Of a stretch of 29,313 bases of DNA, positions 258 to 29,300 are shown piece by piece (the first letter of the stretch is position 1; every line of letters starts with the position of its first letter). Source of the stretch: Andalucia godoyi And28 (Eukaryota > Protista > Jakobida); assembly GCA_009859145.1 (NCBI GenBank), contig VRVR01000045.1, positions 1 through 29,313 of the forward strand. The letters run 5' to 3'. Below the pieces are notes generated by a model that worked only from the letters and a program-made list of their open reading frames with translations, searched no databases and was not told the origin of the DNA. A program made the translations under genes and the position numbers.

Positions 258-3200
258 TCACGACTGACAGAACTCTTGCATTCTGTTCACAAGAACGGCA
301 TCTGCACTGGTGCGTTTCTTCACCTCAAACAGACTCGGGAACTTATGATGCAATGCTTGGAAAAAGGTTCGCAAACGTCGCCGGCCCTCCGTGTCAAGCG
401 CTGGAATCGCAAGGGACGGATTCAATACATCGTTCAGAATACGTGCGCGGATTTGGAATAGTGCGGATCTGTTATGCAGCCGAGTATGGGATTCGACATG
501 AGTTGATTCTTTCAGGTAAATCGCTACCGGCGGCAACCACGACAGGACGTCTCCAATTGTCAGGTACAACGCCGTCAGCACAGCTTGCTGTAGACACACT
601 TGCAAACGCTCCCCGTCGGACAGATCCGCCAATGAACGCACGGAAACCAGCCAGTCGGGCGAGAAGGCGACGTGGTAGTGAAACTCTTTTTTGTCACGCT
701 TCTGGATAAACGATGCGCCGCCCCAGTCAATCAAACATATGGGAAACCGAGAGTCGCTTTGCACCTCCTGCAACAGCACCACATTCTGTGGACAAATGTC
801 CATGTGATGCACACCATTCTGGCTGCACTGTAGTATGATGCTGGTCAACTGCTGCAAAAGTTCCGTGCAAAAAGCGAGGGAGCGGTCCGGGTAACACGAT
901 GCAAGCGGCAACGGCACTCCTACAGGAGCAGTGCACAGAATTGCTCCATGATCGGACTGTTCAGAATGCAAGAGAGTGGGGACCCAGAAGCGACGACGGT
1001 CCCAGTCGATTCTGGAAAGCTCTTGGAGTGCACCCAGTTCGGTGGTCCACTCCGCGAGCTTCGATGCCGGAAAATACTTGACAACGACGGATGTTGTTGA
1101 ATCAAGAGTCGCGGTCGCTGGTTCCACAGCATCCATCTTCCCGATGCCATGGACCGGTGCACGCTGCAGCATTCCAGTCAATTCCAGTTTAGATGAACTG
1201 GAGAGTGAGCTCACGATTCCAGAAGAAAACATAGAGAGCGCTGGTTGCAGGGCTCCATTCCATCCGCACAAAGAATGAGGATCACTGGACAAGGAAAAGC
1301 AAAGACCTTTCATACCGTTCTCTTGCAGTGCAATTGGCACAATTTCCAGCAGTTCGCAGTCCCATCCAAACTCTAACGGATCAAAGACACACTGTGGCGA
1401 ATCTCCATCCAGTTATGGCGCAGGGAGTTGAGCGAACTGACGATCACATACAGGTGTGCAAAACTCCTGAATGAGTACTGCCATCGCATTGTCCACACCG
1501 CTTCGCTCTTTCAGTTCAAAAAGCGATGGAGCCACGTCTCTCAGCTGCTGGAAAAACAAGCGAAGAGGCCCAAGACCCTTCAAAACAGCCGTATCAAGTG
1601 AGGCATCCAGCAGATTACCGATGATGACTCTTCGAATCTTAAACAGGTCGTCCTTCGTTCGCACGCGTGTGTGCGAGTCCTGTTGCAGGTTCTTCTTATC
1701 AAGGACAATGGCCATTGGCGGTAGCCATGAAAGCACGTCGCCGAATGCAATGTACATTGTGGTCAGAATGGCTTGTTGCAGGCAAACCTGCAGTCGCTCG
1801 CCATCGGACAGATCTGCCAACGACGCCACTGCATCCAGCCAATCGGGTGAGAACGCAGAATGGTAGTGGAACTCATCGTCGCTCTTTTGCAAGAATGATG
1901 CACCGCCCCAGTCGATCAAGCATACAGGAAACATAAAATCATTGAGAGGTTCCGTCAGAAGCACGATGTTCTGCGGACAAATGTCCATATGGTAAATGCC
2001 CTTCTCGTGGCAATTCGCCACGATGGACGTCAGCTGCAGAAGGAGCTCGGTGCAATACTGAACCACACGGTCCGAAAAACAAGACGCAAGCGGCAACGGA
2101 CTTCCCACAGGAGCGGTGCATAGAATGCCGCCACGCTCGCACTGCTCGGAGAGCACAAGAGACGGCACCCAATACTTGTGAGCGCCCCAGTCGAGTCTTG
2201 AAATCTCGAGCAGAGCATTTCGCTCGGTTTCCATATCTGCGAGTTTCGAAGGGGGAAAGCTCTTCACGACCACTGGGGTCGACTGATCCACCAGACCTGT
2301 TGCAACCTCGACTGCATCCGGTTCTCCCACATCATGTACAGGTCCACGCTGTAGCATTCCGGTTAGCTCGACTTGGTGTGCAATTCGTAATGAAGAAACA
2401 ATTGCAGACGATGCTGCAGAGACAACAGGGGGAGCTTCTCCGTTCCAAGCACACAATGTATGAGAGTCAAACGACAACAACGTGCACAGCGCGTACAAAC
2501 CCTCGGTGTCCAATGTAACGGCATCAGTTTGAAAAAAATCATAGTCCCACCCTTTGCGCGTCTGCATAATGCGCAGATGCAAGAAGACGATCGACGTGCG
2601 GTTGCACGCAAATCCCCAGTACGAGCGCCGGCGTATGCCGCACTCTTCGACCATGTGTGCAAAGCGTTGGTACACTTGCCGAATAGCCTCCTCCAACTTC
2701 GCGTCCGCATGCTCGCCGCCAGATCCTTTAAGCTCTCCGACAACACAAGACTCAAAGTACGTGGGCAATCGCTTAGCAATTCGTCCTCGACAAAACAGCA
2801 AATCCACACGTTGGATCAGTCCATACAGAGCACTTCTCGAGAAGTCCACAAGGTGCACATCACCGTGTTTGGAGAGGAACCGAGTGAAAAACAGCCGAAA
2901 CTGATCTTGCAGCGGTGGTTCGGGGGAGTTGAGAGGTAAACTTCCAATCGTGTCATTCCACATGGATTGGAAATCATCCCAGTGCAAAGGAGCGGGAGCG
3001 GACGCGAACAGATGCTGGAGAGAGACCTTCGAAGTATGTAATTTTGTGCCGCGGCTGCGTGATGAGGACCCTACCGCCAACAAATCTTGAGATAATTTGG
3101 AGAGGAAATACTTGATATTCGACACCTCCTCTGCTGCTCGGGACTTCTTCGCTTGTTCCTCCGACTTCTTCGCTTGCTCTTCGGCAGCAAGTCGTCTTTG

Positions 3201-3284
3201 ATGCTCTGCCTCTTTCTCTAGGCTCAGCTGCTCGATCCGCTTGAGCAGCTTCTGGATCTCATCATTTGGATCAGGCGAACTCAT
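258..3284 (-). CDS. Coiled-coil / PD-(D/E)xK REase-like / tandem protein kinase-like protein (Crinkler/RHS-type effector architecture); 2 exons, join(1452..3284, 258..1391), about 988 aa
   Basis: ORFs 1413..3284 and 258..1340 are in the same frame, separated by one TAA that lies inside a 60-nt GTATGT...CAG intron. Both kinase copies have VVVK, a helix-C Glu, HMDICPQN and LIDWGG. The N-terminal part has RVDLLF...VVGELKG (REase-like) and an EEQAKKS coiled coil. The sequence upstream of the track's GTG start (GWDCELL) aligns with GWDYDFF in copy 1. Confidence 0.8.
1392..1451 (-). other. Predicted spliceosomal intron, 60 nt, phase 0, containing an in-frame TAA
   Basis: Minus strand reads cct|GTATGTgatcg...ataactgg...cgccaCAG|tgt. 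Removal gives the continuous reading ...QEFCTP-CVFDPLEFGWD... Confidence 0.8.
3142..3183 (-). repeat. Two near-identical 21-bp units encoding EEQAKKS in the kinase N-terminal coiled coil
   Basis: gacttcttcgcttg starts at 3142 and again at 3163. Confidence 0.75.
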
Positions 3285-3846: not shown

Positions 3847-5046
3847 TTATCCTGTACCTCGAATTCCATGAATTCTGTCGCCAACCAAAGAGAAAAGAAT
3901 GTCGGGAGGCATAGCTACAGTCTCGTTGTCGTTTCTGTAATAGTAGGAGGATCCGGGATTCGCGCAGTGAACAGTGCTACTCGGTGAAACGTCGATACGT
4001 ACGACAACTAATTCGTCAGGGCAGTTGGAAGTCATCAATTGAAGGAGGTCGCTGAGCTTTTTCTCAAGACTTTCGACGTAATGCCGTGTTTCTCCTGTTA
4101 GAACCAGGCCAGGTGGGCGAATAAGGCCGTTAATGCCGTTAGTTGCTTCATTCTGCAAGACCGTCACAGGATCAAATTCGACCAAAATGTCATTCAAGCA
4201 GGAGGGCATGATTGTTTGGCGTAAGCGCTCAACAATTTTGCGCTTCACTGCGTCGCGATCAGCAAATGGGATGTGGACACCCTGCACCACCGTCGAGTCG
4301 TGCACGCCAAGAAGCATTCTGCCTCCTCTGCAATTCAGAAACGCACAAACATTCTTCGGAACCATATTTTCTAAGTGGAATTGAAGACTCTCAGCAGACA
4401 TCGGATCCCACTCAATCTTGCCGCCTTTGCACTCCAGTTCATGAGACTCGTCCAGAAACAGTTTCATTCCTTTGACAAATATCAGTTCAGTTCCTGGAAT
4501 TCTTTTGAGAAGTGGACGAGCGTCAGCTTCCCTGGATATTGCGCATTTCTTCATCAGAGACAAGGCAAGTTTGTGCATCAGTTCTTTCTGGAGCACACCA
4601 GAACCAGCTTGGACTTCCGCAGATGCAATCACGTTGCCGTCGATCGACACGCTCCCAGCACAACTGCCCTCATTCATGTTCACATCCTGTCGAATGTCCA
4701 CGACATGTCCTTGCGACTGCAAGTTAACTCGTAACTGTTCCAACGCCGCAAGAGGAGTAAGCGATACTTCTGGTCTCTCAGAACTCGCATTTTTCAATGC
4801 CTGATGCAAAGCACAGATATTGTTCTTCACGACAAAATCTTCAAATGCCTTTTCTCGTGCCATCTTCTTTTTCACTTGTGGATTGTCACAGTATCCTGTC
4901 GCAAAACCCTCGACAGAAACCGTATACGTCCATTTCTTGGGTTCGGATTCATCACCGACTTCGGAAGTTTGCACGCCTTTGTCGATTTGTTGTGTGTATT
5001 CGTACGTCAATGCCACGGCATTCATGACTCCTGAAACCTCTGTCAT
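3847..5046 (-). CDS. Two dsRBD-like domains fused to a Schlafen/AlbA_2 domain, 399 aa
   Basis: ATG start. The C-terminal half has ESHELECK...KNVCAFLNCRGGRMLLGVHD...VQG (AlbA_2/Schlafen signature with ExxxxExK). The N-terminal KWTYTVSVEGFATG...KKKMAREKAFE and TPLAALEQL...GSVSIDGNVIASAE...KELMHKLALSL segments fit the dsRBD alpha-beta-beta-beta-alpha pattern. Confidence 0.75.
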   Translation of the reverse strand: MTEVSGVMNAVALTYEYTQQIDKGVQTSEVGDESEPKKWTYTVSVEGFATGYCDNPQVKKKMAREKAFEDFVVKNNICALHQALKNASSERPEVSLTPLAALEQLRVNLQSQGHVVDIRQDVNMNEGSCAGSVSIDGNVIASAEVQAGSGVLQKELMHKLALSLMKKCAISREADARPLLKRIPGTELIFVKGMKLFLDESHELECKGGKIEWDPMSAESLQFHLENMVPKNVCAFLNCRGGRMLLGVHDSTVVQGVHIPFADRDAVKRKIVERLRQTIMPSCLNDILVEFDPVTVLQNEATNGINGLIRPPGLVLTGETRHYVESLEKKLSDLLQLMTSNCPDELVVVRIDVSPSSTVHCANPGSSYYYRNDNETVAMPPDILFSLVGDRIHGIRGTG

Positions 5047-7886: not shown

Positions 7887-9051
7887 CTAAGGAAGAGCGG
7901 AACGGTTGTTGTGGATTGATCGTTGAACCTCTTCTGCATGACGGAGACTGTCGGTGTCAGGCAACAAATGTGTGGCACTTTGAGCCACTGCCAGACTGTT
8001 TTCAAGGTCCTTCTTGGAAAGCCTGTTGTTGCAAAAATCCACAGACAGTGAGTTCCATGCTCCTTCCAGGTCGCTCGCACTTCGAAGATAACAGTACCGC
8101 GCAAGCAAGATCTTATTCTGGAATTGCAGAAATGGGTGAAGAAGGAAAGGGGGTACAACAGAACAAAAAGACATAAACAGCGACGGAGGGAAAAAGATCG
8201 CTGCAGCGGAAGCAATTCCAGCCACACCAGACGCGAGCACGATACAAACCTCAAGATTTCTTTGCAGAACTTTTGCTTGTTCGAAGAGAACGCCTTTGGA
8301 TTCTTGCAAGTCGTTGTCAAATCCATTGAATTGAGGACGAAGGTTCTTCTTCCACTCTGACCATTGGGACACCATCAGTTTCTTACTCTCTGCCTTTTCC
8401 TTTTGAAACTCGGTCACATTCTGGAAAACCTTCCTGCCGCCGTGGAGCCATTTGTAATAGGATGCATCAGAGACATAGTCACGCGCCAGATTGCATTTGG
8501 TCTGCATCATGTCCTTCAGAGAGACAACCACGTCTTCTTCATAAGCAAGGCGCTCCGAGTTGCGCATTTCGGAGTCCAGCGAGTCAAACCGGTTGAGAAG
8601 TTGTCTGTACAAACGACTAGCATCAGAGTGTTCTTTTTGCCAAACTTCGAGATAATCAGAAAAATGAATACTGCCAATCGTCGAGGTGGCAAATGTTGAC
8701 AACGCAGCAGTAGCCCTCAACAACTTACTCGACGCGAACCGGCCAAGTGTCAACGATTGCAAGCACGCAGTGAGACCTGCTGAAATCCATAAACTGGCCC
8801 ATGTAATCTTTTGGATTTTGGAAACAAAATCGCGTTCTGCTTCGTGGCAATTGTACGCAATCAACGTACCTCGGCGTTGATTCCAATACAAGGATCTCAA
8901 GGAAGGTCTGGAGTGGGTCGCGAATACGTCAGTAACAGAGTCTGGAAAAAAGAGGTCATGGTCGAAGAGCATACCCGTCCCACTTTTTCTGTTCTACCGC
9001 ATGGTCAGCCGCAGTTGGCGCAGCAGAAAATAAAGACGTGAAAAGACCCAT
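7887..9051 (-). CDS. Tandem SLATT-like (2TM + 2TM) membrane protein; 2 exons, join(8975..9051, 7887..8907), about 365 aa, with MGxxxS N-terminus
   Basis: Two repeats of helix - hydrophobic hairpin - amphipathic helix: ITWASLWISAGLTACL/LLRATAALSTFATSTIGSI...EHSDASRLYRQL and VCIVLASGVAGIASAAAIF/LFMSFCSVVPPFLL...LARYCYL. The upstream exon MGLFTSLFSAAPTAADHAVEQKKWDG joins in frame through a 67-nt intron. The SLATT assignment is by pattern only. Confidence 0.65.
8908..8974 (-). other. Predicted spliceosomal intron, 67 nt, phase 2
   Basis: Minus strand reads gacgg|GTATGCtcttc...gtTACTGACgtattcgcgacccactcCAG|accttcc, with a canonical-like donor, branch point and acceptor. Splicing gives ...KWDG-PSLRSLYW... 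Confidence 0.72.
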
Positions 9052-9197: not shown

Positions 9198-10202
9198 TTA
9201 ATAAAGTTCAAAAAAATTCGTCAACAACTGGCATGTAGTCCCATATCGAAAGGCCGAAAGAATATCTGCAATATCTGCAGCTAAACGATAACGAGCGGCA
9301 AGTCGCTGTTGTTCATGTTGTGTTTGCAATGGCACCTGCGGCTTAAACTTGGCAAACAAATCCACTTGCTGATCGTATGGATCGGCCAAACAGGAAAAGG
9401 AAACGCCCTTGAACAAACACAGAAGAGTACGAATGAGCACTCTTTCCTGCAGATAGCTGTTGTCGGCAAGAGGAAAATCGGCAATCGATGCCATCACTGC
9501 TTGCTTGACGGAAAATGAAGAAACTTGCCTCCAAAACGCACGTTTCTGCACATTTCGCAGATGCTTCACCGTACGAATCACGTCTTGAAAAGCAGGGAAT
9601 GACTGTCAAAAGAAAGAGCGTAAGATTCGATGATGAGGGTATACAAAAGCAGCAAAGAGACATACGCTGACAGCAGCGACGGTTGAACGATGCTCGTCGT
9701 CGAGATGACTATCGTCCCAGGCGCTGTCATTTTGCCGTGAAGGGACTTTCCATTTCCCATCCTTGAAAATTGCGGGCAGCAAGTCATACTCGAATTCTTC
9801 CGTGTCCACAACTTCGACAGACACGCGATTTCTGATCGCACTGTGAATTCCAACCTGTTCACGGACGAATGATGCAAACTGCTTCAATACGGTGCGGGAA
9901 GCCGGCTCTGGAGCAGAAGAGTCCAACATGATACGACAGAGTAGATCCACATCCGATCCAGAGGGAACGTCCAGGCCCTGAATCGAACTGCCGGCTAGCT
10001 TGATCCCTCCCGTCAACTTGTAATTCTTCTGAAGAAACTTTTTTGTCAATTTGCGCTCCGCAACAGGACGGCTGGGAGAAAGAATACGTCTCATGCGGTC
10101 TACGAGCTCGCTACGAGCTTGCTGTTGCTCGGGTCCCAGGCGAAGACGACTGGACACAGGCTTCGGACGCTCTCGAAGAGACTTCAAAACATCGATTGAC
10201 AC
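9198..10202 (-). CDS. cGAS/OAS/SMODS (CD-NTase)-like nucleotidyltransferase; join(9666..10202, 9198..9602), at least 313 codons, true start unresolved
   Basis: NTase motif LAGSSIQGLDVPSGSDVDLL (hGS-x11-DhD) and third acid in EYDLLPA. After the intron, FPAFQDVIRTVKHLRN...SSFSVKQAV...LADPYDQQVDL matches the OAS/CD-NTase C-terminal helical lobe pattern. The track start at 10202 is a GTG directly after an in-frame TGA; the first ATG is at 10094. Confidence 0.82.
9603..9665 (-). other. Predicted spliceosomal intron, 63 nt, phase 0, containing an in-frame TGA
   Basis: Minus strand reads gtcagc|GTATGTctctttgctgc...ctctttcttttgaCAG|tcattccct with a strong pyrimidine tract. It joins ORF 9606..10202 to ORF 9198..9581 in frame. 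Confidence 0.88.
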
Positions 10203-10430
10203 TCAATTTTGAAAGTCGTCGGCAAAGTCCCTACACTTCTTCAAGAACTCATCCACATGTTCTTCCACATTCTGAAAATCGTTTGCAAATCGGCGACACT
10301 CTTCTGAAAATGGCACCATTTTGTGAGGCTGCGATTTCGAGAAAACAAAATGTCGAGGCTTTGGTTTCTGGTCAGAAGAAACAGTCAACCGGGTCTTTTT
10401 CTCGGTGATTCGGACCCCGGTCTCTTTCAT
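10203..10430 (-). CDS. Short 75-aa ORF in frame with the NTase; possibly its N-terminal part
   Basis: ATG start. It contains an internal duplicated motif CRRFANDFQN / CRDFADDFQN, and its TGA is immediately followed by the NTase frame. Confidence 0.35.
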   Translation of the reverse strand: MKETGVRITEKKTRLTVSSDQKPKPRHFVFSKSQPHKMVPFSEECRRFANDFQNVEEHVDEFLKKCRDFADDFQN

Positions 10431-10518: not shown

Positions 10519-13500
10519 TTATTGTGACATGTAGCTACTCGCGCATCTCTTGAAGAAGTCCAGCGCATCGGAAGGCGGAAGAGCGATCCACGAATTCAGT
10601 AGCGCAATGTACGCCTCCTTGGTTGACCGATTTTCCTGTTTTCGAAGAAGACGCAGCACATCCGAATCGGGATCATTGGGAGCTGGAAACTTTGCGTCAA
10701 TATCCGGGCTTTGGAGAGAGGCAAGTATGACGCAAACATATCCCTGAAACAGTTCCATGAAACTGCTGTCATGCCACTTCTCCAGTGTCGTTTGAGAAGC
10801 AAATACAATTGCTGCTTGCTCGAATGCACACGAGGGTATCTGAAGTTTCAAATGATGTGCCTCCACATGGTTCACCATTTTCAAAACCTTGATGATAGCA
10901 CAAAAGCCCTTGTAAACATTGTTCAGTTCCTCTATGTTCCTACGCGCACCAACGTTCTGGGATACTTTGAAATCGCCATTTTTTCCATCCAGAAGTAGAA
11001 ATTTTCCAGCCAGAGTCTGCAAAGCGGGTAGCAAATCTACTTGAGCAATATCGGGGCTGTGTGGATCTCGAAGAGACACCGAGAATCGAATCTTGCCGTC
11101 AGTACGACAACTATCAACAACAACCGGTTTATGGCCTTTCGACTCCTCCTGAAGGACTTTCTTCAACGCATCGATAAAGAGGTTTCCGAGGAGTCTTACT
11201 TGCTCCGGGTTCACGGGTTGATTGACCGGAGAAGGCCAAGTTGCAACATTCTCTTGACCATCGTACTGGACACGCGTAGCGAGATTGGAGTTCAAGACTA
11301 CTACCACATCCATATCAGGATCGAACAGATTCGTTTGGTTCGCGATACTCCCACACAATACGGGTTCTGGAGTTAGGGTCAATGAGGGCAATTCTGTTGA
11401 ATGGGCTGAACGTAGCACAGCCCATATAGAACAAATCGCAATTCTTAGAGAATCAAAAAACCTGTTAAAACGGTGAAGCCGACTGTTCAGAATGCTTTCA
11501 TCTTGTTTGAGTTGGGACAAAAACTGCCACAAACCAGCATCCTCTCTGGTTTTCCCAATACGCGTAGAACTAAGCAAATTTTGTATTGCGTTCGAACTGT
11601 CTTCAAGAGAACGTGTTACGTGCTTCCGTGAATCAGCGTCTTGTAGTAAGGTCTCTGATCGAATGGACATGCGTTCTGAACCGGCGCCACTCAATGGAAC
11701 GCCAGAATACGGTGCAGAGTTCCCAGAAGGCATGGAGTTCGGATGCATCGGCTCTGGTTGCTTCGTCTTTGACCCTCCAACGATTCTGCGTGGTATTTGA
11801 GCCCCGCGAAACGCTCTTTCTTTCCATTGAAGAATCGATGAATCGTCGAATGGTTCGCCCTTGAAGACAATTTGGTGGAATTCACTGTTGGGGTGCGCAG
11901 CATGCAACTGTTCCAAAAGACCTCGAATTTCCATCCACCGAATTTCGCCATTCGACGTTCGAACCACCAAAAAAAAGAGCGAGGATGACTGACTCCAGTA
12001 TCGATGGTGTCGGAGGTTCCGGATGCGAAGTATTTCCTCGCCATTTGCTTTCGTGTGAAGATGTGAATCGCCCGATTTCAACTGCAGATAGACACGTTGA
12101 CCAGTGGCTTGATGACCATCGTTCTTAAACTCGATTTCCATGTCGATTCCGTGATCCGAAGTCGTGAGCTCGCGGCAGATCTGCCTGGCTTCCGACACCT
12201 TCGCAATGACTTCTCCCACAAGCACCCGTTCCTTGCTTTCATTATCCAGTGCATGGTTTGTTTGATCGTTCAGTTCCGCCACGCGCAAATCAATCTCAGG
12301 ATCAGCAAATTGCTTTTCAATATCATCTTCAAAAGGCATCTTCTCTTCGCACAATGGACAACAAATGTATGTCTTTCCAATCTCTTTCCTTTGTCGAGCG
12401 ATATCATTATCTGACGGTGATCCACAGGTGCACACATAATGGCGAATTCGCACAATGTCTTTTGCATTCTTCTGTTGAAGATGATTGTGAATGAACTGGC
12501 AAAACACAATCTTCTCGCCGATTTCAATCTCGGGATCGAAAAAGACCTCCAGCAACCCGTTTCGCTCCTCGGTACCAGGAGCCAGTTTGAATCCCATAAT
12601 CTTCGAATCACTTTTCTTCGATGAAAATTCAGCAGCACGCATCCAAAGCCCTTTCTTTTTGAACTCGCCTGTGTAGTGCATTCGGATGACCAGAGTTGAA
12701 TAAATGTCATCCGCAGGCCCCGAAAACAAATAGGAGACCAGCAAGGATGCACGGTGAACCAGTGAAGGAGGCTCCATTCGACACAAGGCCGGGAAATACA
12801 AGAACGTTGCATCTCCACGAATTGCTTCTCTCAAGCATATCGTCTGCTTGGTGAACGTATGGTCCAGGCCATGAAGCATCATCCGGTGCTCATGGTCCGA
12901 GACTGACACAGACAACTCGGCTCGATGAACAAAGTCACCGCGCAGCAAATCTTGGTGCGGAAAGCTTCCTCGTTGCTCAGGATCCGAAGACACTGCTTTC
13001 ACTAATTCTTGTCCATACTCGCTCATCAACGATGGACGCAGTAGATAGTACGATGCAAACTGCAGCGGCCATATCAGTCCAACAGCGCACATCATGTTCA
13101 CTACAGCTTTCACGCCGTCATCCGTGCATTGAACGGGGCCAAGACGACTCTTCATCTCGGAGAGCAACTCTTCCAGTGTGATCAGCGACTTTGTTTTCAC
13201 GTCGTCCTTGAAAGCCAGAATTTCCCTGCTTATGTGTTGATACCGATTCGAAGAGGAACTCCATGGAATGTTTTCCCAATTGATACGCTGAACGATTTCT
13301 TGCGAAAGTTCTGCACAGCCTGTGTTTTTCAGGGCACTGGTCTCGAAAATACAATCTACAAAGCCTCTCTTTCGAGCAACAGCAGCGACACTTTCCTTTG
13401 GAACACGCCATCGGCGTGCATCGCAACGACCAGCCACCAGAATCTTCGTTACTGGCTTGTCTTGCATCACGTATGAGACCAGTCGATCCCAATCCGAAAT

Positions 13501-15369
13501 CGTTTCGACAACATTCGATTTTTGAGGATCGACAACGAGGATCACCAAGGATGCGTCGTGCATGAAGAGCTGATGAATCAGCCGTTGATCTGCTTGCCCG
13601 CCAAAATCCCACAACAGAATCTCTCGTTGCGATGTCGAGTCGTTGTTCGAATGATTAGAGCTTAAAGGCCATCTTGTTGACCATGCGCCAACCGTCGAGC
13701 ATCTCCCTGGATCGAACTCATCGTTCGAGAGACGCTGCGCCAATCCCGTTTTTCCTGCCGAGGTGTCACCAACAATGAGCACTTTGGCATTCATGTAAAG
13801 ATGATCGTTACTTGCAGAAGAAGGATTGAAACCCGATCCTGAAGAGCTTTGAGCAAAAATGCTCGTTAAATCCCAATAGTGAAGTGTTGCTATGTTGGAA
13901 CACGAGATTAACTCATTCGGGTTGGTGAACGACCATGTTAAAGCCATCATTGGTGCAAGAGAATACATGGCTGCCAGAACAGAGCCTTGAAAAGCATTCC
14001 AAACGCGAATTTGAAAATTGCGATGACCAGACACAAAACGTGGATCATCCTGGGCATACCACAGAAGGCACAAAACCTCAGACTGAGATTCCAATATTCC
14101 CACCAACTTGTCGTTTTGTAGATCCCAATGGAAGATGCAAGAGGAGGATGCTTTCGACACGACAAGAAGATACCGTTCACAAGGACTCCACGAAACAACT
14201 AACGCTTCAATGGATGAACCCAACGGAAAAGGGCATCGGTGGACAATGCGGGCTCCATTCTCTGCCAAAACATCCCAAGCTACAATAGCGTCAGATGATA
14301 TGGACAACAGATGATGTCCATTCGAAGAACAAAGTAAGGATTGCACTTGAGAATGATGACCAAGCCGGCCCGAATTCACACAGGTCCAATTTTCTGCAGT
14401 GGGAAGCGACGCCACATAGAGTTGACCAATCTTGTCCATCCCATACACTCGATTGTTAAAGGCACATAAAGCAACGAAATCCGTAGGCATGGGTTCAGTG
14501 ACAAGTTTGCAGGAACTTTCTGAATCAAGCGCAGAAACCAGCACTAGGTTTGGTTGCTTCTCCATGAAACCCAGACGCTTGGACAGGAACAGACATTCTT
14601 CACGAGATAGCTTACCATGAGCAACAGATATTGGCACAGAAAGATCAGTTCGTTGAAGCTGAGGGTTCCGTAAAACACGGTGTTTTTCAGCAGATTCCCC
14701 AAGCAAAACAACAAACCACTGCCTTGCATCCTGGAAAAACAAATGCCTTCCATCGAACGAGAAATCTGCCTTCGTAGCACCACCAGACAGTTCTTCTGAA
14801 CAAAAAAGTACTGCCAAAGAACAGCTGATGAGTTGGGATGCAGCAAATGCAGCAGACACGGATATCAAGATTTCCCGTTCAATTTGAGAAGGTCGATTTG
14901 AAACATCGTAGAATTTGACGGTCAAGGCGTGGCGCATTGTCTTGGAACGTTCGTGAACTGGAAAAAATTCTGACAAGCTTTGCGGCAAGAAAGAAGCGAT
15001 AGGAAACTCGTTCACTTCTTTGCTGTCGGCAACTCGGAAAGGTTGCGCTTCGGCATCAAGGGTCTCGATAAACCGTCGAATTCGGACAGCAGATCGACTC
15101 TCATCCGAATAACCCCTGCTGACAAACACAACATGGATCACGTTCCTTTCGTTAAATTTTTCACTCGTGAAAGTCTGATGTATGAATTCTTTCAATGCGA
15201 TTTCATTCGACTCGTCCAACCGTTCATCAACGGCCACCCTATTGTGCCTGAACGAAGACAGGCTGTGCAATCGGATGAAACGGGCGCTTGTCGTCAGCAG
15301 TTCATAACCATTCTTGCTGCACAGCGACCACAAACTTAGAGCGTAGGGTCTCCCACTGAGGTCCGTCAT
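10519..15369 (-). CDS. 1616-aa Roco protein: N-terminal unknown domain - WD40 repeats - Roc GTPase - COR - Cys cluster - DUF4365-like nuclease fold - cGAS/OAS/SMODS-like nucleotidyltransferase
   Basis: Uninterrupted ATG-started ORF. WD40-like units at about 14500-13870 (LLCSSNGHHLLSISSDAIVAWD, VSGHRNFQIRVWN). Roc motifs from about 13794: GDTSAGKT, STVG, LWDFGGQ, LVAGRCD, FETSA. CTCG...CPLC at about 12430-12350. DHGIDMEIEFK...VYLQLKSG at about 12230-11800. NTase LCGSIANQTNLFDPDMDVVV, VDLLPA, IIKVLK...IPSCAFEQ, PAPNDPDSDVL at about 11480-10519. Confidence 0.9.
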   Translation of the reverse strand: MTDLSGRPYALSLWSLCSKNGYELLTTSARFIRLHSLSSFRHNRVAVDERLDESNEIALKEFIHQTFTSEKFNERNVIHVVFVSRGYSDESRSAVRIRRFIETLDAEAQPFRVADSKEVNEFPIASFLPQSLSEFFPVHERSKTMRHALTVKFYDVSNRPSQIEREILISVSAAFAASQLISCSLAVLFCSEELSGGATKADFSFDGRHLFFQDARQWFVVLLGESAEKHRVLRNPQLQRTDLSVPISVAHGKLSREECLFLSKRLGFMEKQPNLVLVSALDSESSCKLVTEPMPTDFVALCAFNNRVYGMDKIGQLYVASLPTAENWTCVNSGRLGHHSQVQSLLCSSNGHHLLSISSDAIVAWDVLAENGARIVHRCPFPLGSSIEALVVSWSPCERYLLVVSKASSSCIFHWDLQNDKLVGILESQSEVLCLLWYAQDDPRFVSGHRNFQIRVWNAFQGSVLAAMYSLAPMMALTWSFTNPNELISCSNIATLHYWDLTSIFAQSSSGSGFNPSSASNDHLYMNAKVLIVGDTSAGKTGLAQRLSNDEFDPGRCSTVGAWSTRWPLSSNHSNNDSTSQREILLWDFGGQADQRLIHQLFMHDASLVILVVDPQKSNVVETISDWDRLVSYVMQDKPVTKILVAGRCDARRWRVPKESVAAVARKRGFVDCIFETSALKNTGCAELSQEIVQRINWENIPWSSSSNRYQHISREILAFKDDVKTKSLITLEELLSEMKSRLGPVQCTDDGVKAVVNMMCAVGLIWPLQFASYYLLRPSLMSEYGQELVKAVSSDPEQRGSFPHQDLLRGDFVHRAELSVSVSDHEHRMMLHGLDHTFTKQTICLREAIRGDATFLYFPALCRMEPPSLVHRASLLVSYLFSGPADDIYSTLVIRMHYTGEFKKKGLWMRAAEFSSKKSDSKIMGFKLAPGTEERNGLLEVFFDPEIEIGEKIVFCQFIHNHLQQKNAKDIVRIRHYVCTCGSPSDNDIARQRKEIGKTYICCPLCEEKMPFEDDIEKQFADPEIDLRVAELNDQTNHALDNESKERVLVGEVIAKVSEARQICRELTTSDHGIDMEIEFKNDGHQATGQRVYLQLKSGDSHLHTKANGEEILRIRNLRHHRYWSQSSSLFFLVVRTSNGEIRWMEIRGLLEQLHAAHPNSEFHQIVFKGEPFDDSSILQWKERAFRGAQIPRRIVGGSKTKQPEPMHPNSMPSGNSAPYSGVPLSGAGSERMSIRSETLLQDADSRKHVTRSLEDSSNAIQNLLSSTRIGKTREDAGLWQFLSQLKQDESILNSRLHRFNRFFDSLRIAICSIWAVLRSAHSTELPSLTLTPEPVLCGSIANQTNLFDPDMDVVVVLNSNLATRVQYDGQENVATWPSPVNQPVNPEQVRLLGNLFIDALKKVLQEESKGHKPVVVDSCRTDGKIRFSVSLRDPHSPDIAQVDLLPALQTLAGKFLLLDGKNGDFKVSQNVGARRNIEELNNVYKGFCAIIKVLKMVNHVEAHHLKLQIPSCAFEQAAIVFASQTTLEKWHDSSFMELFQGYVCVILASLQSPDIDAKFPAPNDPDSDVLRLLRKQENRSTKEAYIALLNSWIALPPSDALDFFKRCASSYMSQ

Positions 15370-17810: not shown

Positions 17811-18225
17811 AATATTTTACGCATGACTCCTGAACGGCGTCGTCCCCAAGAGAGTTTCTTTTGCCAGACTGCTCGCCGTTCGCGACTCTACCAGTCCCCA
17901 GCATTATCTCAGAAAAAGTGCTGTGGACCATTTTGCGTATTTGTCCACTGTAGTAGTCAAGCCGGGAACTCGAAGTGCATCAAAAAGCAAACGTTGTTCT
18001 TCGGAGTTTCCTTGTGTGACCTCGTCACATTCTCTCTTTCTGCACCACTCTTTTCATCCGACCTGAAGTTTGATGATAATGAGGGGAGCTTCACCTGCAA
18101 GCGTGGTGCTCGAAGATGACAAATCACCTGATTTTATTTCTCTTTTCTTTGTAGTTGTGTTTATCGTCTGTGTCGTCAAGCTATGCGTGTTATGTTGTGA
18201 GGATTGTGTTGGCAGCCCAGAAGAA

Positions 18226-19299
18226 ATGAGCCGCCAACCTGCTACAACAAGGAGGGAACCTACTATTGCGTCACAGCTTGAGGAATTACAGAGACGGGAA
18301 CGAGACGTCAGAAATCGAGAAGTCGTGCTTCAGCAATCGACCCGTGACGTTGAAGAACGAGTGCGACAAGCTCAGGCCAAAGACGCGTACATCCAAGGAC
18401 GAGAGAGAGCCATTGCACAACAAGAAGTCGTGCTTCAGCAATCGACCCGTGACGTTGAAGAACGAGTGCGACAAGCTCAGGCCAAAGACGCGTACATCCA
18501 AGGACGAGAGAGAGCCATTGCACAACAAGAAGTCGTGCTTCAGCAATCGACCCGTGACGTTGAAGAACGAGTGCGACTGACTCAACAAAAAGAACAGCAT
18601 TTACGGAGGTTGGAACATGATGTGTCACCGCAATACACCGCACTTCAGCAGTCTAAACATGAGATGCAACAACTGGCGAATTGCGAGTCGTCGGAGACAG
18701 ACGATGATGACGAAGAGGAAATAGACCGTGAGAGCGACCTCTCTTCTTCAACTCCGCGATCTTCCGAACGATTCGTTTGGCCGAATGTGTCTTTGCGTGC
18801 GATGGCCCATCGACGGCAACAGCAACCTCGTTTGACTGCATCGCTTCGTGCTCGCAGGACCCAGCTAAGACATCAAATCTGGAAGATCGTTGGATACGAA
18901 CCTGCATTGCACCTGCTGAACGATGCGCTGCTGCACTCTTCTTTCGTACAGGAACACAGTCGTCTGACACTGGTTTCCAACGAAGGGCTGGCGTGGTTTG
19001 GCGATGCCGTTCAGCGAATGTGGGCCTCAGCACTGGTATTTGAATCTTCCTCTCAAGCATCGAAAAAACGTTTACACGATCTTCGCGCGAATTATGTGAC
19101 GGATAAATCCTTTATCCCGTGGGCCAAAAGTCACAGAGTGGAACAGTGTTTGTTGACTGGGAACGGTTTTAAGCATAATGTGCAGGCATGCAAAGTGTTA
19201 GGAACAGCTGTTGAGGCGATTATTGCTGCTGTCTTTCTTGAATGTGGTATGCAGGCTGCAGGCAGATTCTGCCAGGCGGTGTATGATTCGAACGGATGA
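18226..19299 (+). CDS. Repeat-expanded coiled-coil protein with a C-terminal RNase III domain (divergent active site); the ORF is open upstream to 18070
   Basis: ALLHSSF...SNEGLAWFGDAV...KVLGTAVEAIIAAVFLECG aligns to the RNase III signatures NERLEFLGDAV and KxLADxxEA. No dsRBD is visible. The start is uncertain: ATG at 18073 or 18079 versus 18226. Confidence 0.8.
   Translation: MSRQPATTRREPTIASQLEELQRRERDVRNREVVLQQSTRDVEERVRQAQAKDAYIQGRERAIAQQEVVLQQSTRDVEERVRQAQAKDAYIQGRERAIAQQEVVLQQSTRDVEERVRLTQQKEQHLRRLEHDVSPQYTALQQSKHEMQQLANCESSETDDDDEEEIDRESDLSSSTPRSSERFVWPNVSLRAMAHRRQQQPRLTASLRARRTQLRHQIWKIVGYEPALHLLNDALLHSSFVQEHSRLTLVSNEGLAWFGDAVQRMWASALVFESSSQASKKRLHDLRANYVTDKSFIPWAKSHRVEQCLLTGNGFKHNVQACKVLGTAVEAIIAAVFLECGMQAAGRFCQAVYDSNG
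18318..18577 (+). repeat. Perfect 105-bp tandem repeat, about 2.5 copies, encoding 35-aa units (EVVLQQSTRDVEERVRQAQAKDAYIQGRERAIAQQ)
   Basis: gaagtcgtgcttcagc begins at 18319, 18424 and 18529, and the copies are identical. Confidence 0.95.
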
Positions 19300-22065: not shown

Positions 22066-22404
22066 TTTTAATGATCACATCAAATTCATTAAGATAAATG
22101 AAATACAAGAAAGAGAAAAAGAAAAGAAGCTCGCAAACCATCTGGAGACAGTATGCTGACCTTCAAGGACCTTCGCCACTGAATAGGCAATCCCGCCAAT
22201 GGAGTGTTAATAAGAGGCGGCGAATGCAGCGGATGCAAGCACGGCGACGAACTGATGCGATGTGACGTAGAAAAGAGTGCGATCAGAACGTCAACGATTG
22301 GGAAGCGACCACAACAGCATCTGTTCTCGCGGCGACAACTCCTTTTTCATAGAAATCGTTTTAAGTCATCTCTCGCCGAGTTTCTGATTTCACTGGATTC
22401 AACA

Positions 22405-24399
22405 ATGGCGGCTTCCAGCACAAAGACCGCCACTGAATTTCGCTCAGCATTCTTATCAAGTCAGCACTGCAACCCCCAAGTAAGAGCGTCACTGCTGCTA
22501 ACCAGAACTCTGTTGTTGCGCGCCTACAGTGAATGGAAATATTCCCCAAAGATTTCACTCAAGGCCTTGGTTGAAGAATGGACAAAGCAAGGATTCACCG
22601 AACCCCCGGCCTCCAATACGTCCGATCTTAATCTTACGACCAGATTCTTTCATCTAAACCTCCCCTTGGAGCTTACTTCTGGATCAATATCGAGTTCTTC
22701 CGCTGCAACCGCTTCCAATCCAGTTAGACCCTCAACCGCATCTTTGGCACAGCCTGCGATTGTCATTTCCAATGCCAAACATTCGAGTTTAACACGCACA
22801 CCAGCTCAAGTCAACGAACGAAAACAACTGCCAGTTGCCAACAGGTCCGAACCGCCAAAGACTGCGCCTCCAATTGATCCAGAGATGCTGCGGAGGCGCG
22901 CCTCGCTCTTGCAGTCGCCTGTGAAGCAACACGAGGATATCACAGCGGATGTAAGTCGGTTCATTCATAGCTATGTCAATGAAGGTGCGATCACCGCAAA
23001 GAGCACAGTTCAAGTGAATTCTCGAATGGCTCGCGTTTCGCTCTTGGATGGAAACAATGCTTCTCTGTTAGAACAAGTTTCGCTCTTGGGAACACTTCGC
23101 ACATCTCCCACCGCTGCCAACAGCCTGAACGACCAGGGATCGAGGCTGTTCCTCAACGTTCATCATCCCTTCTGCTTTGTCGCTGTCGGAGTTCAAGGTT
23201 CTGGAAAAAGCCACACGGTCGGTGTCCTGCTTGAAAATTGCATGATGACGGCCGCGCAACTTGGATCGTGTCCTTCCCCTGCCGCTGCTTCAGCAACTCC
23301 CGTTTGTGACTTGGGCATCACTACTCTTCGGGAACCGATGTCTGCCCTTGTCTTTCACTATGACCAAGGATGCAACACGATATGCGAGGCTGCGGGTCTC
23401 GGCACCCCATCTCCAGATATGCTTTCTTTTATTTCGGACAAGATTCGTGGCACTGCGTCTTCCGTATCGCTGCCACGGGTAGAGGACATCGTTGTGCTCG
23501 TGTCACCGTCGTGCTACCGACAGAGAAAGCGAGCCTATGCAGAAAAGGTTGGGAGCCACTGTGTTGTGCTTCCTTTGCTGTTCTCACCGCAGACGCTGAC
23601 TGCAAAGCACATTTGCCAGATGATGCACCTCACCGAGGGATCGAACCAACTGTACAAGGCGGTGATGTTGACAGAGCTAAGGAGCATTCAGCGGCAGGAT
23701 ACACCCCTCAACTTCTCACAGATGATGGATTCTGTTATCGCAAACTGTCCATTTGACACGCAGAAAGACGCACTTCGTCAACGGAAAGATGTGTTTGAAG
23801 AATTCATGGCAGATTGTGAAAAGAACGCCGAGTACAAGGATGCGTTTGGAAATCTGGAGCTGTTCGCCAAGAAAGGTCGCATGATCATTGCAGATCTATC
23901 GGATCCGATGCTGTCTCCAGACGAGGCAAATGGCCTGTTTCATGTGTTATTCGAGCAGTTTCGGTCGATTCAAGGACTCACCGGCAAGGTCGTTGTCTTT
24001 GACGAAGCACACAAGTACATGAAGGAAGGTGATTGTTCTGGCACGCTTTGCAGTGCAATCTGCGAGTCTGTGCGACTGTTGCGACATGAAGCAACTCGAG
24101 TGGTGATTTCGACCCAGAATCCAAAGGCTCTGACTTCGGAGCTGCTGGAACTTGCGAACATCGTCTTGATCCATCGATTCCACAGCCAAGAATGGTTCAA
24201 CTATCTGAAAACCAAAATTTCATTGGAAGATGGTCTCCTCTCGGAAATTCAGGAATTGGGTGATGGCGAGTCGTTGGTTTTTGCAAATCGCAGTGCCGTG
24301 CAAGGTTACAAGCAAAGTGCTTCTGTCATTCCGTGCACAGTTCGCCGACGGCTCACCAAGGATCGCGGTGCGTCGGTTGTGCACCAAGAAGTCAATTGA
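22405..24399 (+). CDS. HerA/FtsK-superfamily P-loop ATPase, about 664 aa from the first ATG
   Basis: Walker A GVQGSGKS, Walker B VVVFDEAHKY, then STQNP and LIHRF...WF. It has a low-complexity Ser/Pro-rich N-terminal linker. The track start at 22204 is GTG; the ATG at 22405 has an aacaATG context. Confidence 0.8.
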   Translation: MAASSTKTATEFRSAFLSSQHCNPQVRASLLLTRTLLLRAYSEWKYSPKISLKALVEEWTKQGFTEPPASNTSDLNLTTRFFHLNLPLELTSGSISSSSAATASNPVRPSTASLAQPAIVISNAKHSSLTRTPAQVNERKQLPVANRSEPPKTAPPIDPEMLRRRASLLQSPVKQHEDITADVSRFIHSYVNEGAITAKSTVQVNSRMARVSLLDGNNASLLEQVSLLGTLRTSPTAANSLNDQGSRLFLNVHHPFCFVAVGVQGSGKSHTVGVLLENCMMTAAQLGSCPSPAAASATPVCDLGITTLREPMSALVFHYDQGCNTICEAAGLGTPSPDMLSFISDKIRGTASSVSLPRVEDIVVLVSPSCYRQRKRAYAEKVGSHCVVLPLLFSPQTLTAKHICQMMHLTEGSNQLYKAVMLTELRSIQRQDTPLNFSQMMDSVIANCPFDTQKDALRQRKDVFEEFMADCEKNAEYKDAFGNLELFAKKGRMIIADLSDPMLSPDEANGLFHVLFEQFRSIQGLTGKVVVFDEAHKYMKEGDCSGTLCSAICESVRLLRHEATRVVISTQNPKALTSELLELANIVLIHRFHSQEWFNYLKTKISLEDGLLSEIQELGDGESLVFANRSAVQGYKQSASVIPCTVRRRLTKDRGASVVHQEVN

Positions 24400-26312: not shown

Positions 26313-29300
26313 TTATCGCAAATCGACAACAAGCCGAACAGAGTCCAAGAAAGAAAGGGGGGAAAAAATGTCCGCTTGTGGATGGAAGTGGATGGCGGTG
26401 CTTGCTGCGCTCTTTGGGATTTGCGCAGAAGTATTGCGCCTGCAATGCTCATTCCAAACCGTCGTGATCGGCGGCAACCCCACGAGTGTCACACGAAGGG
26501 AATCTCCTTGAGCAAGAGCTGCTCCGAGAGGATTTGTCGGGGCAGGAAGCAAAGTTGCAGTCTTTTGGATGGAATGCGAGACTGGTGGTTTTTGCTGATG
26601 AGCAAAACGATGCACTGCGAGAGAGGTCAGGGAGGGAAGTTTTGTTGAAAAGCGATATTCGGATGCGGACCCTTGAACGGATGACGCGCCATCCGAACCT
26701 ATTGCTTGCGAGAAGGACGCCGGAGGACGCTTGGCAGGCATGATTTCCAATTGATTGAGATCTTGTTTCTTTGTAACCGCCAGTATTTTGTTGCCCAGCA
26801 CCAAGCCAATGCGCGCAACCATGAGCACCATCTCGAACAAGGAAACGACGAGGTTGATCGTCACGACAATCAGCTGAAACATTGCAACGAAATGCGTGAC
26901 ATCTTCGTTCCACGTATTTGAGCGTCCCTTTCCGAACATGGCGTACAGCGAAAACAGCTGAAGCAGATCGGAAGCCGAATTGAGCACATGCATTGCATTG
27001 GAAACCCGCTCTTCAGAAGGGTGTTCGTACAAGAAGAATATCGCTCGAGCAGTCGAGACACATGCAACGAAACAGAGCTGCACTTCAGTGCCAAGCCCAA
27101 GCTCTGCACCGGAGACGACGAAGAATGCATCGATGGCAAAGATAGTGATTGATCCAAGGTGCATCCACCAGTACTTTCCAACATAGACAAACAGCCCAAG
27201 ATCCACTTGTCGTGCAAACTCCGCCTCGGGACCGGAAGGTCCACGTCGGAGAAGCGGCATCAGACCGAAAAAGAAAATTGCACACTCTGTGAAAAGAACG
27301 AAAAATGCGAGGACTGTTTCCCAAGCGGGGCGGACGCGCATCCCCGCGGTCATCTGAACACCGATTGTGACGAGCAACGGATAAATCGAAGCGTAGAACA
27401 ACATAAAGTAAATTCCGCGAAAGAAAATCCAGAAACGGAAAAAGAGAGCTGATGGCTTACAACCAACATCGGAGGGACCGAAGGAAAACCGACGACGCAG
27501 CATGAGAAATGCAAGTGCGCATCCAAAAGATCCAACAAACAAAGTTGTGATGGCCATCAGCACTGTGAGCATCGTGGTGAACGTAAAAATAAAACAAGCG
27601 GAGTACGTCTGCATCGTGTCCATGAAGTACAACCGCAAGTTGGAATCCGACAGAGGATCGATGTCTGCATCATCCGGTGATTGGATCATACCGATGGACT
27701 CCCAAACGGACATCCGAACATTCATCATCACAACACTGAACCCTTGGATGAATTGCAAATACCAAATCGGAAATTGGAGTCGCAATGAGCCCAACCGGGT
27801 GATACTCTGCACTGAATCGAACATTTGCATAAATCCAGGTCCTCCTGCTGAGAGCCCAACACTGGTAGTAACTGCGGTTTTCCCATGCTCCGAGGAAACT
27901 ACTTCAAAAGCTGGAGCTTGAGGAATTCCGAGATCCACAATGGTAGACACATTGCAATGGCGTCCACGATGTGCATTGTCGCACAGACACGATCCTGTTG
28001 AGGAGCACGTTCCGTGATCATTGCAAGTATAAGTTCGATTGCAAAACACCGAGCAAGATGGTCCGTACATATTCGTCAAACAAGATGTGCAATTTGGGCC
28101 GGAAAACGGCTCAACACAGCTGCAAAGCCCAGAGCCATTCTTGCCATCCAAACAAGATCCACCATTGGCACAAACGCGACACTGTTGGCATTCGGGGCCC
28201 CAGAATCCGCTGAGACACTGGTTGCACGAAGATGCACCATGCACGGAGTTCGAGAAGGGAGTTTGACATGCTGTGCAACGGAATGTCGTGTCATTGGAAA
28301 ACCATCCAGGAAGGCAAGCGACACAGAATGCTCGACTCACATGCGACTCTGTTCCATTCGAACATTTCACACACTGCGACACGCTCGATACGTTCGAAAA
28401 CCATCCTTCGGGACACTGGCGACACGTGGTCCTGTCTGTGGATGATTCGTGCCCAACAGGACACGCCTGGCAAATGTAATTAACCGACGAATTTGAAAAC
28501 ATGCCAGGAGGACACAAGAAACACGAATCAGCCGACGCCGACGACTGGTGGCCAGCCGGGCACAGTTCGCACACTGACGAATTGGGTGCACCGCTCACCG
28601 TCGAGAATGTTCCGGCGGGACAATACTGGCACGTTGAACTGCTCGTTGCTCCAACGGCCGTGGAATACGTTCCAGGCGGACACTGGAATGCCGATTCTGT
28701 CGAATTCAGCCCAGACTGGTTCGAGTACAGCCCAGCTGGGAGATCGAGACAAGTGGTCGAGTTACTCGCTCCTGTTGTTGGAGAAAATGAACCAGCCGGG
28801 CACGGAACGCAGCTCGCAGACCCATTTGCACCGATTTCTGACGAGAATGTCCCTGAAGGACAAGCTGTGCATGCTGATGAATTTGACGCACCCATAACGC
28901 TCGAAAACGTCCCTGCATCGCAAGCAAAGCACAATGCTGAAGAATTGGAACCAATAATTGGAGAAAACGTACCAGAAGGGCATGCCAAACATGAAGCAGA
29001 AGAATTGGCACCTGTCAACGAAGAAAACGTTCCGGCCGGACAGCTTGTACACAACGAAGACGAGTTTGCCCCATCCACGTCGGAGAATGTACCAGCAGGA
29101 CACTCACTGCAAACCGACATTGCATTCGCACCTACGATCGCAGAGTACGATCCCAATGGGCACGTCTGACATGTTGAAGCATTCGATGCACCGAGTGCTG
29201 GAGAGAACGTCCCCGCAGGACACACCGTGCACATCGACGAATTTGCAGCTCCGGCTTCTGTGGAATACGTTCCGGCAGCACACGGCATACATACAGAAGA

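Follow-up and report, generated by a model that had tools for sequence, protein, structure and literature searches.

The window analyzed here is a stretch of 29,313 nucleotides from the genome of the jakobid Andalucia godoyi And28 (contig VRVR01000045.1, positions 1 to 29,313). Its minus strand carries the gene under study, ANDGO_01851, which we consider to encode a putative nucleotidyltransferase (NTase). At this locus, two open reading frames (ORFs), 10202..9606 (198 codons) and 9581..9198, flank a gap of 63 nt (9665..9603). An initial annotation, made from the sequence alone, had proposed that both ORFs join via a 63-nt intron, and this proposal was borne out. Removal of the gap keeps the frame (...STVAAVS, then SFPAFQD...), and translation from the first in-frame ATG at 10094 yields a spliced product of 277 aa that shows 100% identity over 100% of its length to the EukProt entry ANDGO_01851.mRNA.1 of A. 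godoyi, a result that was checked by tblastn. The coding sequence consists of 10094..9666 joined across the intron to 9602..9201, while the public label of the gene reads "hypothetical protein". The gene is composed as follows:

Positions 9666 to 10094, minus strand: exon 1, Met1 to Ser143, the N-lobe; exact match to ANDGO_01851 and site of profile matches
Positions 9603 to 9665, minus strand: 63-nt intron of the spliceosomal type (GTATGT...TTTTGACAG), containing an in-frame TGA at 9608..9606
Positions 9198 to 9602, minus strand: exon 2 with the TAA stop (9200..9198), Ser144 to Tyr277, the C-lobe, predicted to be all helical

The 3' end of the intron is a pyrimidine run plus ACAG, and the intron can also be written GTATGT...CTCTTTCTTTTGACAG. 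The 20-Mb genome of A. godoyi is intron-poor; its introns span 55-756 nt and are all of the GT..AG type, while its intergenic spacers measure 44-691 nt (PMC7050145). Since size and ends fall within this range, the 63-nt intron fits the species. Splicing also improves the match to two PADLOC cyclase profiles, which cross the exon junction in the spliced form only, where they score 27.8 and 23.2 bits and extend to residues 211 and 199. On the unspliced sequence, the same two profiles score 24.4 and 18.8 bits and end at residues 164 and 159, a difference of 3-4 bits. In the paralog ANDGO_06078, 3 of the 9 codon positions that match the intron differ, compared to 8% in the exon, although these numbers are small. 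Judged from its sequence, the pair of ORFs with its 63-nt intron is confirmed as a genuine nuclear gene of A. godoyi.

The initial annotation had furthermore called this gene hidden and likely to be missed by automated annotation. For ANDGO_01851 this is incorrect, as the published annotation, which combined PASA with the four ab initio predictors Augustus, SNAP, GeneMark and CodingQuarry (PMC7050145), carries exactly this splice. For the paralog, however, the suspicion was not misplaced. The annotated model of ANDGO_06078 comprises 226 aa and ends ...VAVNVCLFAVFA; because it reads into the intron-equivalent sequence and stops there, it has probably missed the intron and is left without a C-lobe.

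Family searches with ANDGO_01851 point toward the SMODS/CD-NTase superfamily. The top Pfam match is SMODS, both for ANDGO_01851 (6e-4) and for its paralog (5.7e-5). Five PADLOC oligonucleotide cyclase models match ANDGO_01851, the best with 3e-7, and CBASS_cyclase_b is the sole match in NCBIfam (1.1e-7). A hidden Markov model built from 70 bacterial SMODS proteins, with Andalucia left out, recognized the N-lobe with 22.5 bits (E=3e-9 at Z=1), while hhalign against bacterial cyclases gave a probability of 93.3% (E=2.7e-7). Employing a profile of the two Andalucia sequences alone against the PDB, one meaningful match was obtained: CdnD (9ntn, E=0.0039) of a type IV antiphage signaling system based on cyclic oligonucleotides (CBASS).

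The residues expected for catalysis are in place. The set comprises G35-S36 (9992..9987), D48 (9953), D50 (9947) and D104 (9785), the latter within EYDLLPA. The Pol-beta NTase motif hG[GS]x9-13[DE]h[DE]h is found as G35-S36 followed by D48-V-D50, and none of its residues G, S, D and D varies within the alignment of 72 sequences from Andalucia and bacterial cyclases. The third catalytic acid, D104, lies on the modeled strand 138-147 (numbered along a 313-aa form that extends upstream of the annotated Met) and aligns with the LLPA strand of the bacterial enzymes. In the C-lobe, the helices VIRTVK156HLR and SSFSVKQAV correspond in the alignment to the helices IKLAK and SGYHxE of cyclases of the bacterial CdnD type.

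Close relatives were scarce. An exhaustive phmmer search among 1.84 billion representative proteins (E<=1e-3) returned only ANDGO_01851 itself and its paralog ANDGO_06078, which is 92% identical, and a word-index search with the ANDGO_01851 protein retrieved the same two and nothing else. Identity to any bacterial protein amounts to 13-21%. In Pfam, neither OAS1_C nor an OAS-type NTase domain was found at E<=1, the Mab-21 NTase domain (PF03281) was absent from the scan of ANDGO_01851 and its paralog, and NTP_transf_2 (PF01909) was found neither in ANDGO_01851 (E<=1) nor in the paralog (E<=10). Exon 2 alone matched Mab-21_C weakly (E=0.079, 13.5 bits against a cut-off of 24.1). The term "OAS-like", under which the gene was first described, hence does not hold: there is no match to an OAS or Mab-21 N-domain, and the best relatives are bacterial CBASS cyclases.

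For structural comparison, the 313-aa form was modeled with AlphaFold2 (AF2) on a 72-sequence alignment made of bacterial CdnD-type cyclases and Andalucia. The predicted local distance difference test (pLDDT) reached 69.1 overall and 83-93 in the central sheet of the N-lobe. The model displays an alpha/beta lobe followed by seven helices, with residues 169-312 being all helical (pLDDT about 66-77). The intron position coincides with the lobe boundary, between the last helix of the N-lobe and the first helix of the C-lobe. Foldseek against the PDB aligned about 300 columns of the model to CdnD, CdnB, CdnG, CdnC, CdnE, cGAS, MiD51 and NF90 (E from 1.8e-8 to 4e-4), while the viral structure library gave no match to it. 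We regard the two-lobed fold predicted by AF2 and Foldseek as supportive, not as independent evidence. A single-sequence AlphaFold prediction of the 277-aa protein gave a pLDDT of 36 and was not used.

Profile matches, the CdnD match in the PDB and the AF2/Foldseek model support the initial claim of a stand-alone, two-lobed enzyme of the CD-NTase type. We consider it probable, though far from certain, that ANDGO_01851 is a very divergent member of the SMODS/CD-NTase superfamily that is closest to CdnD. Taken by parts, support for the CD-NTase-like assignment is good in the N-lobe and reasonable for the fold as a whole. By analogy with CBASS cyclases, cGAS and OAS, the enzyme would condense nucleoside triphosphates into a second messenger, a small oligonucleotide of cyclic or linear form. 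Such a messenger would then switch on an effector in a defense or stress pathway. From the genomic context, the most conventional receptor candidate would be a SLATT-like membrane protein encoded downstream:

Positions 7887 to 8972, minus strand: ORF of 361 aa, 225 nt past the NTase stop and on the same strand; candidate membrane effector

The predicted 361-aa protein contains hydrophobic helix pairs at residues 56-104 and 235-282. Its sole NCBIfam match is SLATT_1, weakly, at residues 56-137 (8807..8562), with E=0.045 and 13.7 bits for the whole protein and E=0.0043 and 17 bits for residues 40-179. Among nine composition-preserving controls of this ORF, none gave a SLATT match. SLATT stands for "SMODS and SLOG-associating 2TM", and its members are predicted to form pores as effectors in CBASS and similar systems (PMC9226505). 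Of five bacterial contigs that we retrieved, three (L001, L003 and L005) carry QueC, a Cap10-like gene and CdnD, followed by genes for proteins of about 200 and about 210 aa. The former was identified as SLATT_4 in L001 (4.4e-7; scanned there only), and its counterparts in L003 and L005 are 54% and 49% identical to it. The order of a cyclase and then a SLATT or SLATT-like gene is common to the window and these bacterial type IV CBASS loci, although the contigs were top scorers against a profile partly seeded with a CdnD fragment, and their type IV context partly reflects that choice. It is this order, together with the weak SLATT likeness, that makes the 361-aa protein a candidate effector. 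As a SLATT-type protein, we treat it as a lead with roughly even chances. Compared to a second synthetase, a SLATT-like gene would be the more conventional partner of such an enzyme.

Further searches with the 361-aa ORF, by tblastn against plasmids and in the scans of metagenome and bacterial genome contigs, remained blank, and its two halves show no internal repeat. Since its exact product is not in the protein collection, the public model of this gene differs or is missing. A split gene model via a nearby GTATGC donor was tested by hand and breaks the frame.

Several observations weigh against the interpretation given so far. The family scores stay below curated cut-offs, with Pfam SMODS at 20.5 for ANDGO_01851 and 23.8 for the paralog against 26.5, and NCBIfam at 31.7 against 200; since all scores do so, ANDGO_01851 is a distant relative and no typical member of these families. 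The C-lobe encoded by exon 2 gives no significant sequence match. The Foldseek TM-scores are just 0.38-0.46, and this comparison is partly circular because the input alignment of the AF2 model consisted of bacterial cyclases. The protein cluster of ANDGO_01851 comprises one member, with EukProt as its only source, and no transcriptome-source sequence clusters with it. Concerning the putative effector, the SLATT assignment goes back to one sub-threshold match, as the score for SLATT_1 (NF033634) is far under the 41-bit cut-off. The 361-aa ORF matches nothing in Pfam or PADLOC, and in comparison with three bacterial SLATT_4 proteins hhalign gave 0.1% and BLASTP was not significant. Adjacency of genes in a eukaryote is, moreover, no proof of functional linkage. 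Finally, a premature TGA in ANDGO_01851 may mean that it is a non-functional copy. The features concerned are:

Positions 10203 to 10205, minus strand: in-frame TGA, at a position where the paralog ANDGO_06078 has Ser
Positions 10095 to 10202, minus strand: 36 codons upstream of the annotated Met, without ATG, 35 of 36 identical to the paralog
Positions 10206 to 10319, minus strand: former N-terminal extension of 38 codons, MVPFSEECRRF...DDFQN, 34 of 38 identical to the N-terminus of the paralog

The paralog protein starts MVPFSEECRRF... and is uninterrupted across the position equivalent to the TGA. In ANDGO_01851, the ORF upstream of the TGA remains open as far as the ATG at 10430. At 10202, where the ORF beyond the TGA begins, a GTG follows straight after the stop codon; this GTG is not a start codon. 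On sequence grounds, the annotated start at 10094 is merely the first Met after a nonsense codon. Because of the TGA (10205..10203), an ancestral N-terminus of about 75 residues has been lost, including most of a core helix. The codons 10095..10202 encode most of this N-terminal helix, PEQQQARSELVDRMRRIL (residues 24-41 of the 313-aa form, pLDDT about 82), and the Pfam SMODS match of the paralog begins already within the equivalent stretch. TGA is an ordinary stop in this genome: 5 of the 12 long ORFs of the window end in TGA, one of them with an exact product in EukProt, and a reading of TGA as a sense codon was rejected on this ground. An intron that would excise 10203-10205 was rejected as well, as no donor is usably placed and the paralog reads the same codons through.

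Two readings of ANDGO_01851 follow from this: the enzyme functions when started at the internal Met at 10094, or the copy is a young pseudogene. In the latter case it would be a recently disabled subtelomeric duplicate, with the function residing in the paralog ANDGO_06078. We regard this explanation as rather unlikely. Beyond the normal stop codon at the place of a Ser and the core helix that the 277-aa product would miss, it is the location of the gene that speaks for decay. The window starts with (CCCTAA)n telomere repeats at positions 1 to about 200, which degenerate inward. The window is thus the end of a chromosome or scaffold, the whole gene cluster is subtelomeric and the NTase locus lies about 9 kb from the chromosome end, a typical site of duplicated and decaying genes. 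Subtelomeres favor duplication, rapid divergence and decay of genes. However, the TGA is a single disabling change, while no damage is seen in the other 313 codons, in the splice sites or in any catalytic residue. Translation from the Met at 10094 would retain the helix just before strand 1 and the entire catalytic core. The paralog, whose annotated model is without a C-lobe, is furthermore not evidently the better copy. A base-calling error is possible as well, although the known error type of the assembly is homopolymer length and not substitution.

A different explanation involves the upstream neighbor. As initially described, the stand-alone NTase gene lies directly downstream of a large gene that codes for a Roc GTPase and shares its strand:

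Positions 10519 to 15369, minus strand: upstream neighbor, ORF of 1616 aa, with WD40, Roc, zinc ribbon, DUF4365 and an NTase-like tail in this order
Positions 13864 to 14361, minus strand: WD40 of the 1616-aa ORF, from the domain scan
Positions 13282 to 13785, minus strand: Roc GTPase of the 1616-aa ORF (2.4e-20, 73 bits)
Positions 11902 to 12195, minus strand: DUF4365 PD-(D/E)xK nuclease of the 1616-aa ORF (5.4e-14)
Positions 10522 to 11370, minus strand: C-terminal NTase-like region, with GS-x10-DMD at 11352..11308 and DLLPA at 11037..11023

This combination of WD40, Roc, zinc ribbon, DUF4365 and NTase-like tail is an unusual architecture that resembles an immune sensor-effector protein. DUF4365 is a PD-(D/E)xK nuclease and acts as effector of the short-Argonaute SPARDA defense systems (PMC10810196). 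No COR family was found in the 1616-aa ORF by Pfam at E<=1, and about 280 residues after Roc are without assignment. Since the exact 1616-aa ORF and its tail are missing from protein collections, the public model of the Roc gene differs or is absent. A fusion of the NTase and Roc ORFs by read-through is ruled out, as their frames differ.

The C-terminus of the Roc protein was initially taken for an NTase related to the stand-alone enzyme, on the basis of the motifs GS..DxD, DLLPA and I-x-x-x-K. All of these were indeed found in the 1616-aa ORF: the Roc tail (about 280 residues) and the stand-alone enzyme share, in collinear order, GS-x10-DxD, an exact DLLPA, I-x-x-x-K and S-x-x-x-[KE]Q-A helices. 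When the Roc protein was shuffled 20000 times, the pattern turned up in 17 cases, but it was defined post hoc. The statistical support for a relationship, in contrast to the motifs, is marginal. In a single BLASTP comparison of tail and enzyme, E was 0.023 and 100 of 2000 shuffles were equal or better; with phmmer, 29 of 2000 shuffles were as good. Against the bacterial SMODS model, 62 of 2000 shuffles equaled the tail, and against a model including the Andalucia enzyme 10 of 2000 did, which places the empirical p for the similarity at about 0.005-0.05. The hhalign values were 1.9% against bacterial cyclases and 0.3% against the stand-alone enzyme. No family match to the tail exists in Pfam (best NTP_transf_2, 0.17), PADLOC, NCBIfam or PDB. 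A search with the C-terminal 363 aa among 5.8 billion proteins (E<=10) returned nothing, the protein itself included, and metagenome contigs held no relative either. Judged from the motifs, an NTase fold of the Roc C-terminus is likely but unproven, while its specific kinship to the stand-alone enzyme is unproven.

It was also suggested that both proteins, as paired synthetases, could form a heterodimer, amplify a signal or make two messengers. We found nothing in support of such a functional pair beyond adjacency and motifs, and consider it improbable. Both genes are on the same strand, the stop of the Roc ORF is followed by the next ATG after 88 nt and by the annotated start of the NTase after 424 nt, and the profile that includes the stand-alone enzyme ranks the Roc tail above 1990 of 2000 shuffles. 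However, the low similarity, the lack of any family match or relative among the 5.8 billion proteins and a motif pattern that was chosen after seeing the sequences all speak against the pair. CD-NTases are not known to depend on a second synthetase and their usual partners are effectors, which counts against it as well.

Even less probable is a housekeeping enzyme of the Pol-beta type, such as a non-canonical poly(A) or terminal uridylyl transferase. The second Pfam match of ANDGO_01851, MTPAP-like_central (0.015; 8e-4 for the paralog), would fit such a role, and the catalytic motifs are common to the entire Pol-beta superfamily. However, SMODS or CBASS cyclase is the best family in Pfam and the sole one in NCBIfam and PADLOC, CdnD is the only meaningful match in the PDB, and a PAP-associated domain is absent. 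The Foldseek matches listed are CD-NTases, cGAS, MiD51 and NF90, with no poly(A) polymerases among them, and, unlike a housekeeping gene, this gene has a single orphan paralog and lacks orthologues in other organisms. Bacterial contamination or an assembly artifact, which the exclusively bacterial origin of the detectable relatives might suggest, is effectively refuted by the spliceosomal intron with its canonical ends and by the genomic context, a 29-kb setting with telomere repeats, uniform GC and eukaryote-type genes; a second diverged copy in the same genome and the low identity to any bacterial protein (13-21%) speak against it, too.

Returning to ANDGO_01851 as a divergent SMODS-type cyclase, its surroundings may be read together with it. 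The GC content of the window is uniform at about 47%, and eukaryote-type neighbors such as a rhomboid, the Roc GTPase and ephrin-receptor-like repeats are present. No flanking repeats that would suggest a mobile element were found around the three genes, and the scanned long ORFs of the window contain no SAVED, STING or TIR domain. Conflict-type domains are abundant nearby, namely Schlafen AlbA_2, the Roc-nuclease protein, a HerA/mad8-like ATPase and RNase III. As the neighborhood is rich in such domains, a role in defense would fit, possibly against viruses or mobile elements. One might speculate that the three successive genes at 15369-7887, all on one strand (Roc-nuclease-NTase-like, SMODS cyclase and SLATT-like), represent a CBASS-like cassette for immunity in the subtelomere of a free-living jakobid, but we put this forward as a doubtful proposal. 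It would imply that a bacterial cyclase and a pore effector were acquired together, kept adjacent, gained an intron and eukaryotic expression signals and were duplicated, a history that we hold to be just as tentative.

Other ORFs of the window deserve mention in their own right. A 731-aa ORF (22204-24399, plus strand) matches PADLOC mad8 with 4.6e-18 and, more weakly, HerA, CedD and VirB4-type ATPases; it would thus be a bacterial defense- or translocase-type ATPase within a eukaryotic subtelomere. The Schlafen AlbA_2 domain (1.4e-11, over the Pfam cut-off) belongs to a 399-aa ORF (3847-5046, minus strand) whose exact product is in EukProt. The RNase III domain (3.2e-18) is encoded by the ORF 18070-19299 (plus strand), the N-terminal part of which contains three tandem repeats of 105 nt, or 35 codons, at 18293-18607 with 73-100% identity. 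A 991-aa ORF (26313-29288, minus strand) carries cysteine-rich ephrin-receptor-like, NCD3G and TNFR-like repeats and is probably a secreted or surface protein. Next to the telomere, the ORFs 258-1340 and 1413-3284 (both minus strand) show weak and partial protein-kinase matches (1.9e-3 and 8e-6, under the cut-off) and may be a diverged or decaying kinase pair.

Beyond the initial annotation, the present analysis shows that, in comparison with the paralog, the gene is cut short by a TGA, that it is subtelomeric and that a SLATT-like gene follows it downstream. While the gene model itself was already public, the SMODS-type enzyme in a jakobid, its truncation in comparison with the paralog, its subtelomeric position and the possible cyclase-SLATT pairing are new. 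Outside animals, one survey is the source of the known eukaryotic CD-NTases; it detected enzymes of the SMODS type in four lineages, but not in Discoba. An enzyme with an intron and a paralog in a jakobid would add this deep-branching supergroup to the list. Because all scores obtained here stay under curated cut-offs, surveys based on thresholds would undercount such genes. If the downstream gene is indeed a SLATT-type effector, the locus would allow to test whether eukaryotes inherit and use bacterial cyclase-effector pairs as a unit. If the cassette were real, a eukaryote would have retained operon-style pairing of cyclase and effector beyond the CD-NTase alone. Andalucia can be grown in culture, and its intron-poor genome measures 20 Mb. 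For annotation, two lessons emerge: the start of ANDGO_01851 was set by a nonsense codon, and the model of its paralog appears to miss an intron.

Compared to known systems, the Andalucia enzyme would share with cGAS, other cGLRs and OAS the two-lobed Pol-beta NTase architecture, and cGAS and MiD51 are among its Foldseek matches (E about 1e-4). Its EYDLLPA strand is similar to the third-Asp strand of the OAS type. In contrast to these enzymes, it has no evident nucleic-acid-binding spine or zinc thumb, and the scores of bacterial cyclases are far better. According to the domain scans, it is neither an OAS nor a cGLR.

The eukaryotic SMODS proteins (eSMODS) are closer in kind. Culbertson and Levin described them in 2023 in Amoebozoa, choanoflagellates, Ancyromonadida and one sponge, all with PF01909, while Andalucia is absent from that paper and its 33 supplementary files (PMC10732462). 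Like them, the Andalucia enzyme is eukaryotic, its top Pfam domain is SMODS (in both paralogs, under the gathering score) and the nearest relatives that could be detected are cyclases of the bacterial clade D type, which makes it plausible that it came from bacteria. PF01909, however, is found in all eSMODS and not in the Andalucia enzyme. Since the exhaustive phmmer search gave no eukaryotic relative outside Andalucia at E<=1e-3, it is probably not a close member of the eSMODS, whose clade falls within the bacterial clade D04. Its sub-threshold Pfam score could explain why a survey based on gathering thresholds would have missed it.

The best profile, PDB-sequence and Foldseek matches of ANDGO_01851 are the bacterial CBASS cyclases (SMODS, PF18144), with the type IV CdnD (PDB 9ntn/9nto; bioRxiv 10.1101/2025.04.06.647259) and the CdnD of P. 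aeruginosa (6p8u) as named relatives. With about 280-350 aa, it is similar in size to the bacterial enzymes (280-315 aa), and it resembles them in the GS...DxD...D set, the LLPA strand and, as modeled, the helical C-lobe with aligned K and S-aromatic helices. At the third catalytic position it has Asp, whereas the retrieved CdnD-type family has Gln, with a Glu two residues earlier. Asp at this position is found in OAS and most CD-NTases as well. The retrieved family furthermore possesses a glycine-rich N-terminus of the MGGSGG type and QueC/Cap10 neighbors, both of which the Andalucia enzyme lacks. Unlike the bacterial cyclases, it is encoded by a eukaryotic nuclear gene with an intron, and its paralog has a unique helical N-terminal extension. 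A similar mixture of likeness and difference characterizes the candidate effector. While its 361 aa with a second hydrophobic hairpin amount to about twice the size of bacterial SLATT proteins, it resembles them in a hydrophobic helix pair that is followed by an amphipathic W...Y helix, and, as in L001, L003 and L005, its gene comes immediately behind a SMODS gene of the same strand.

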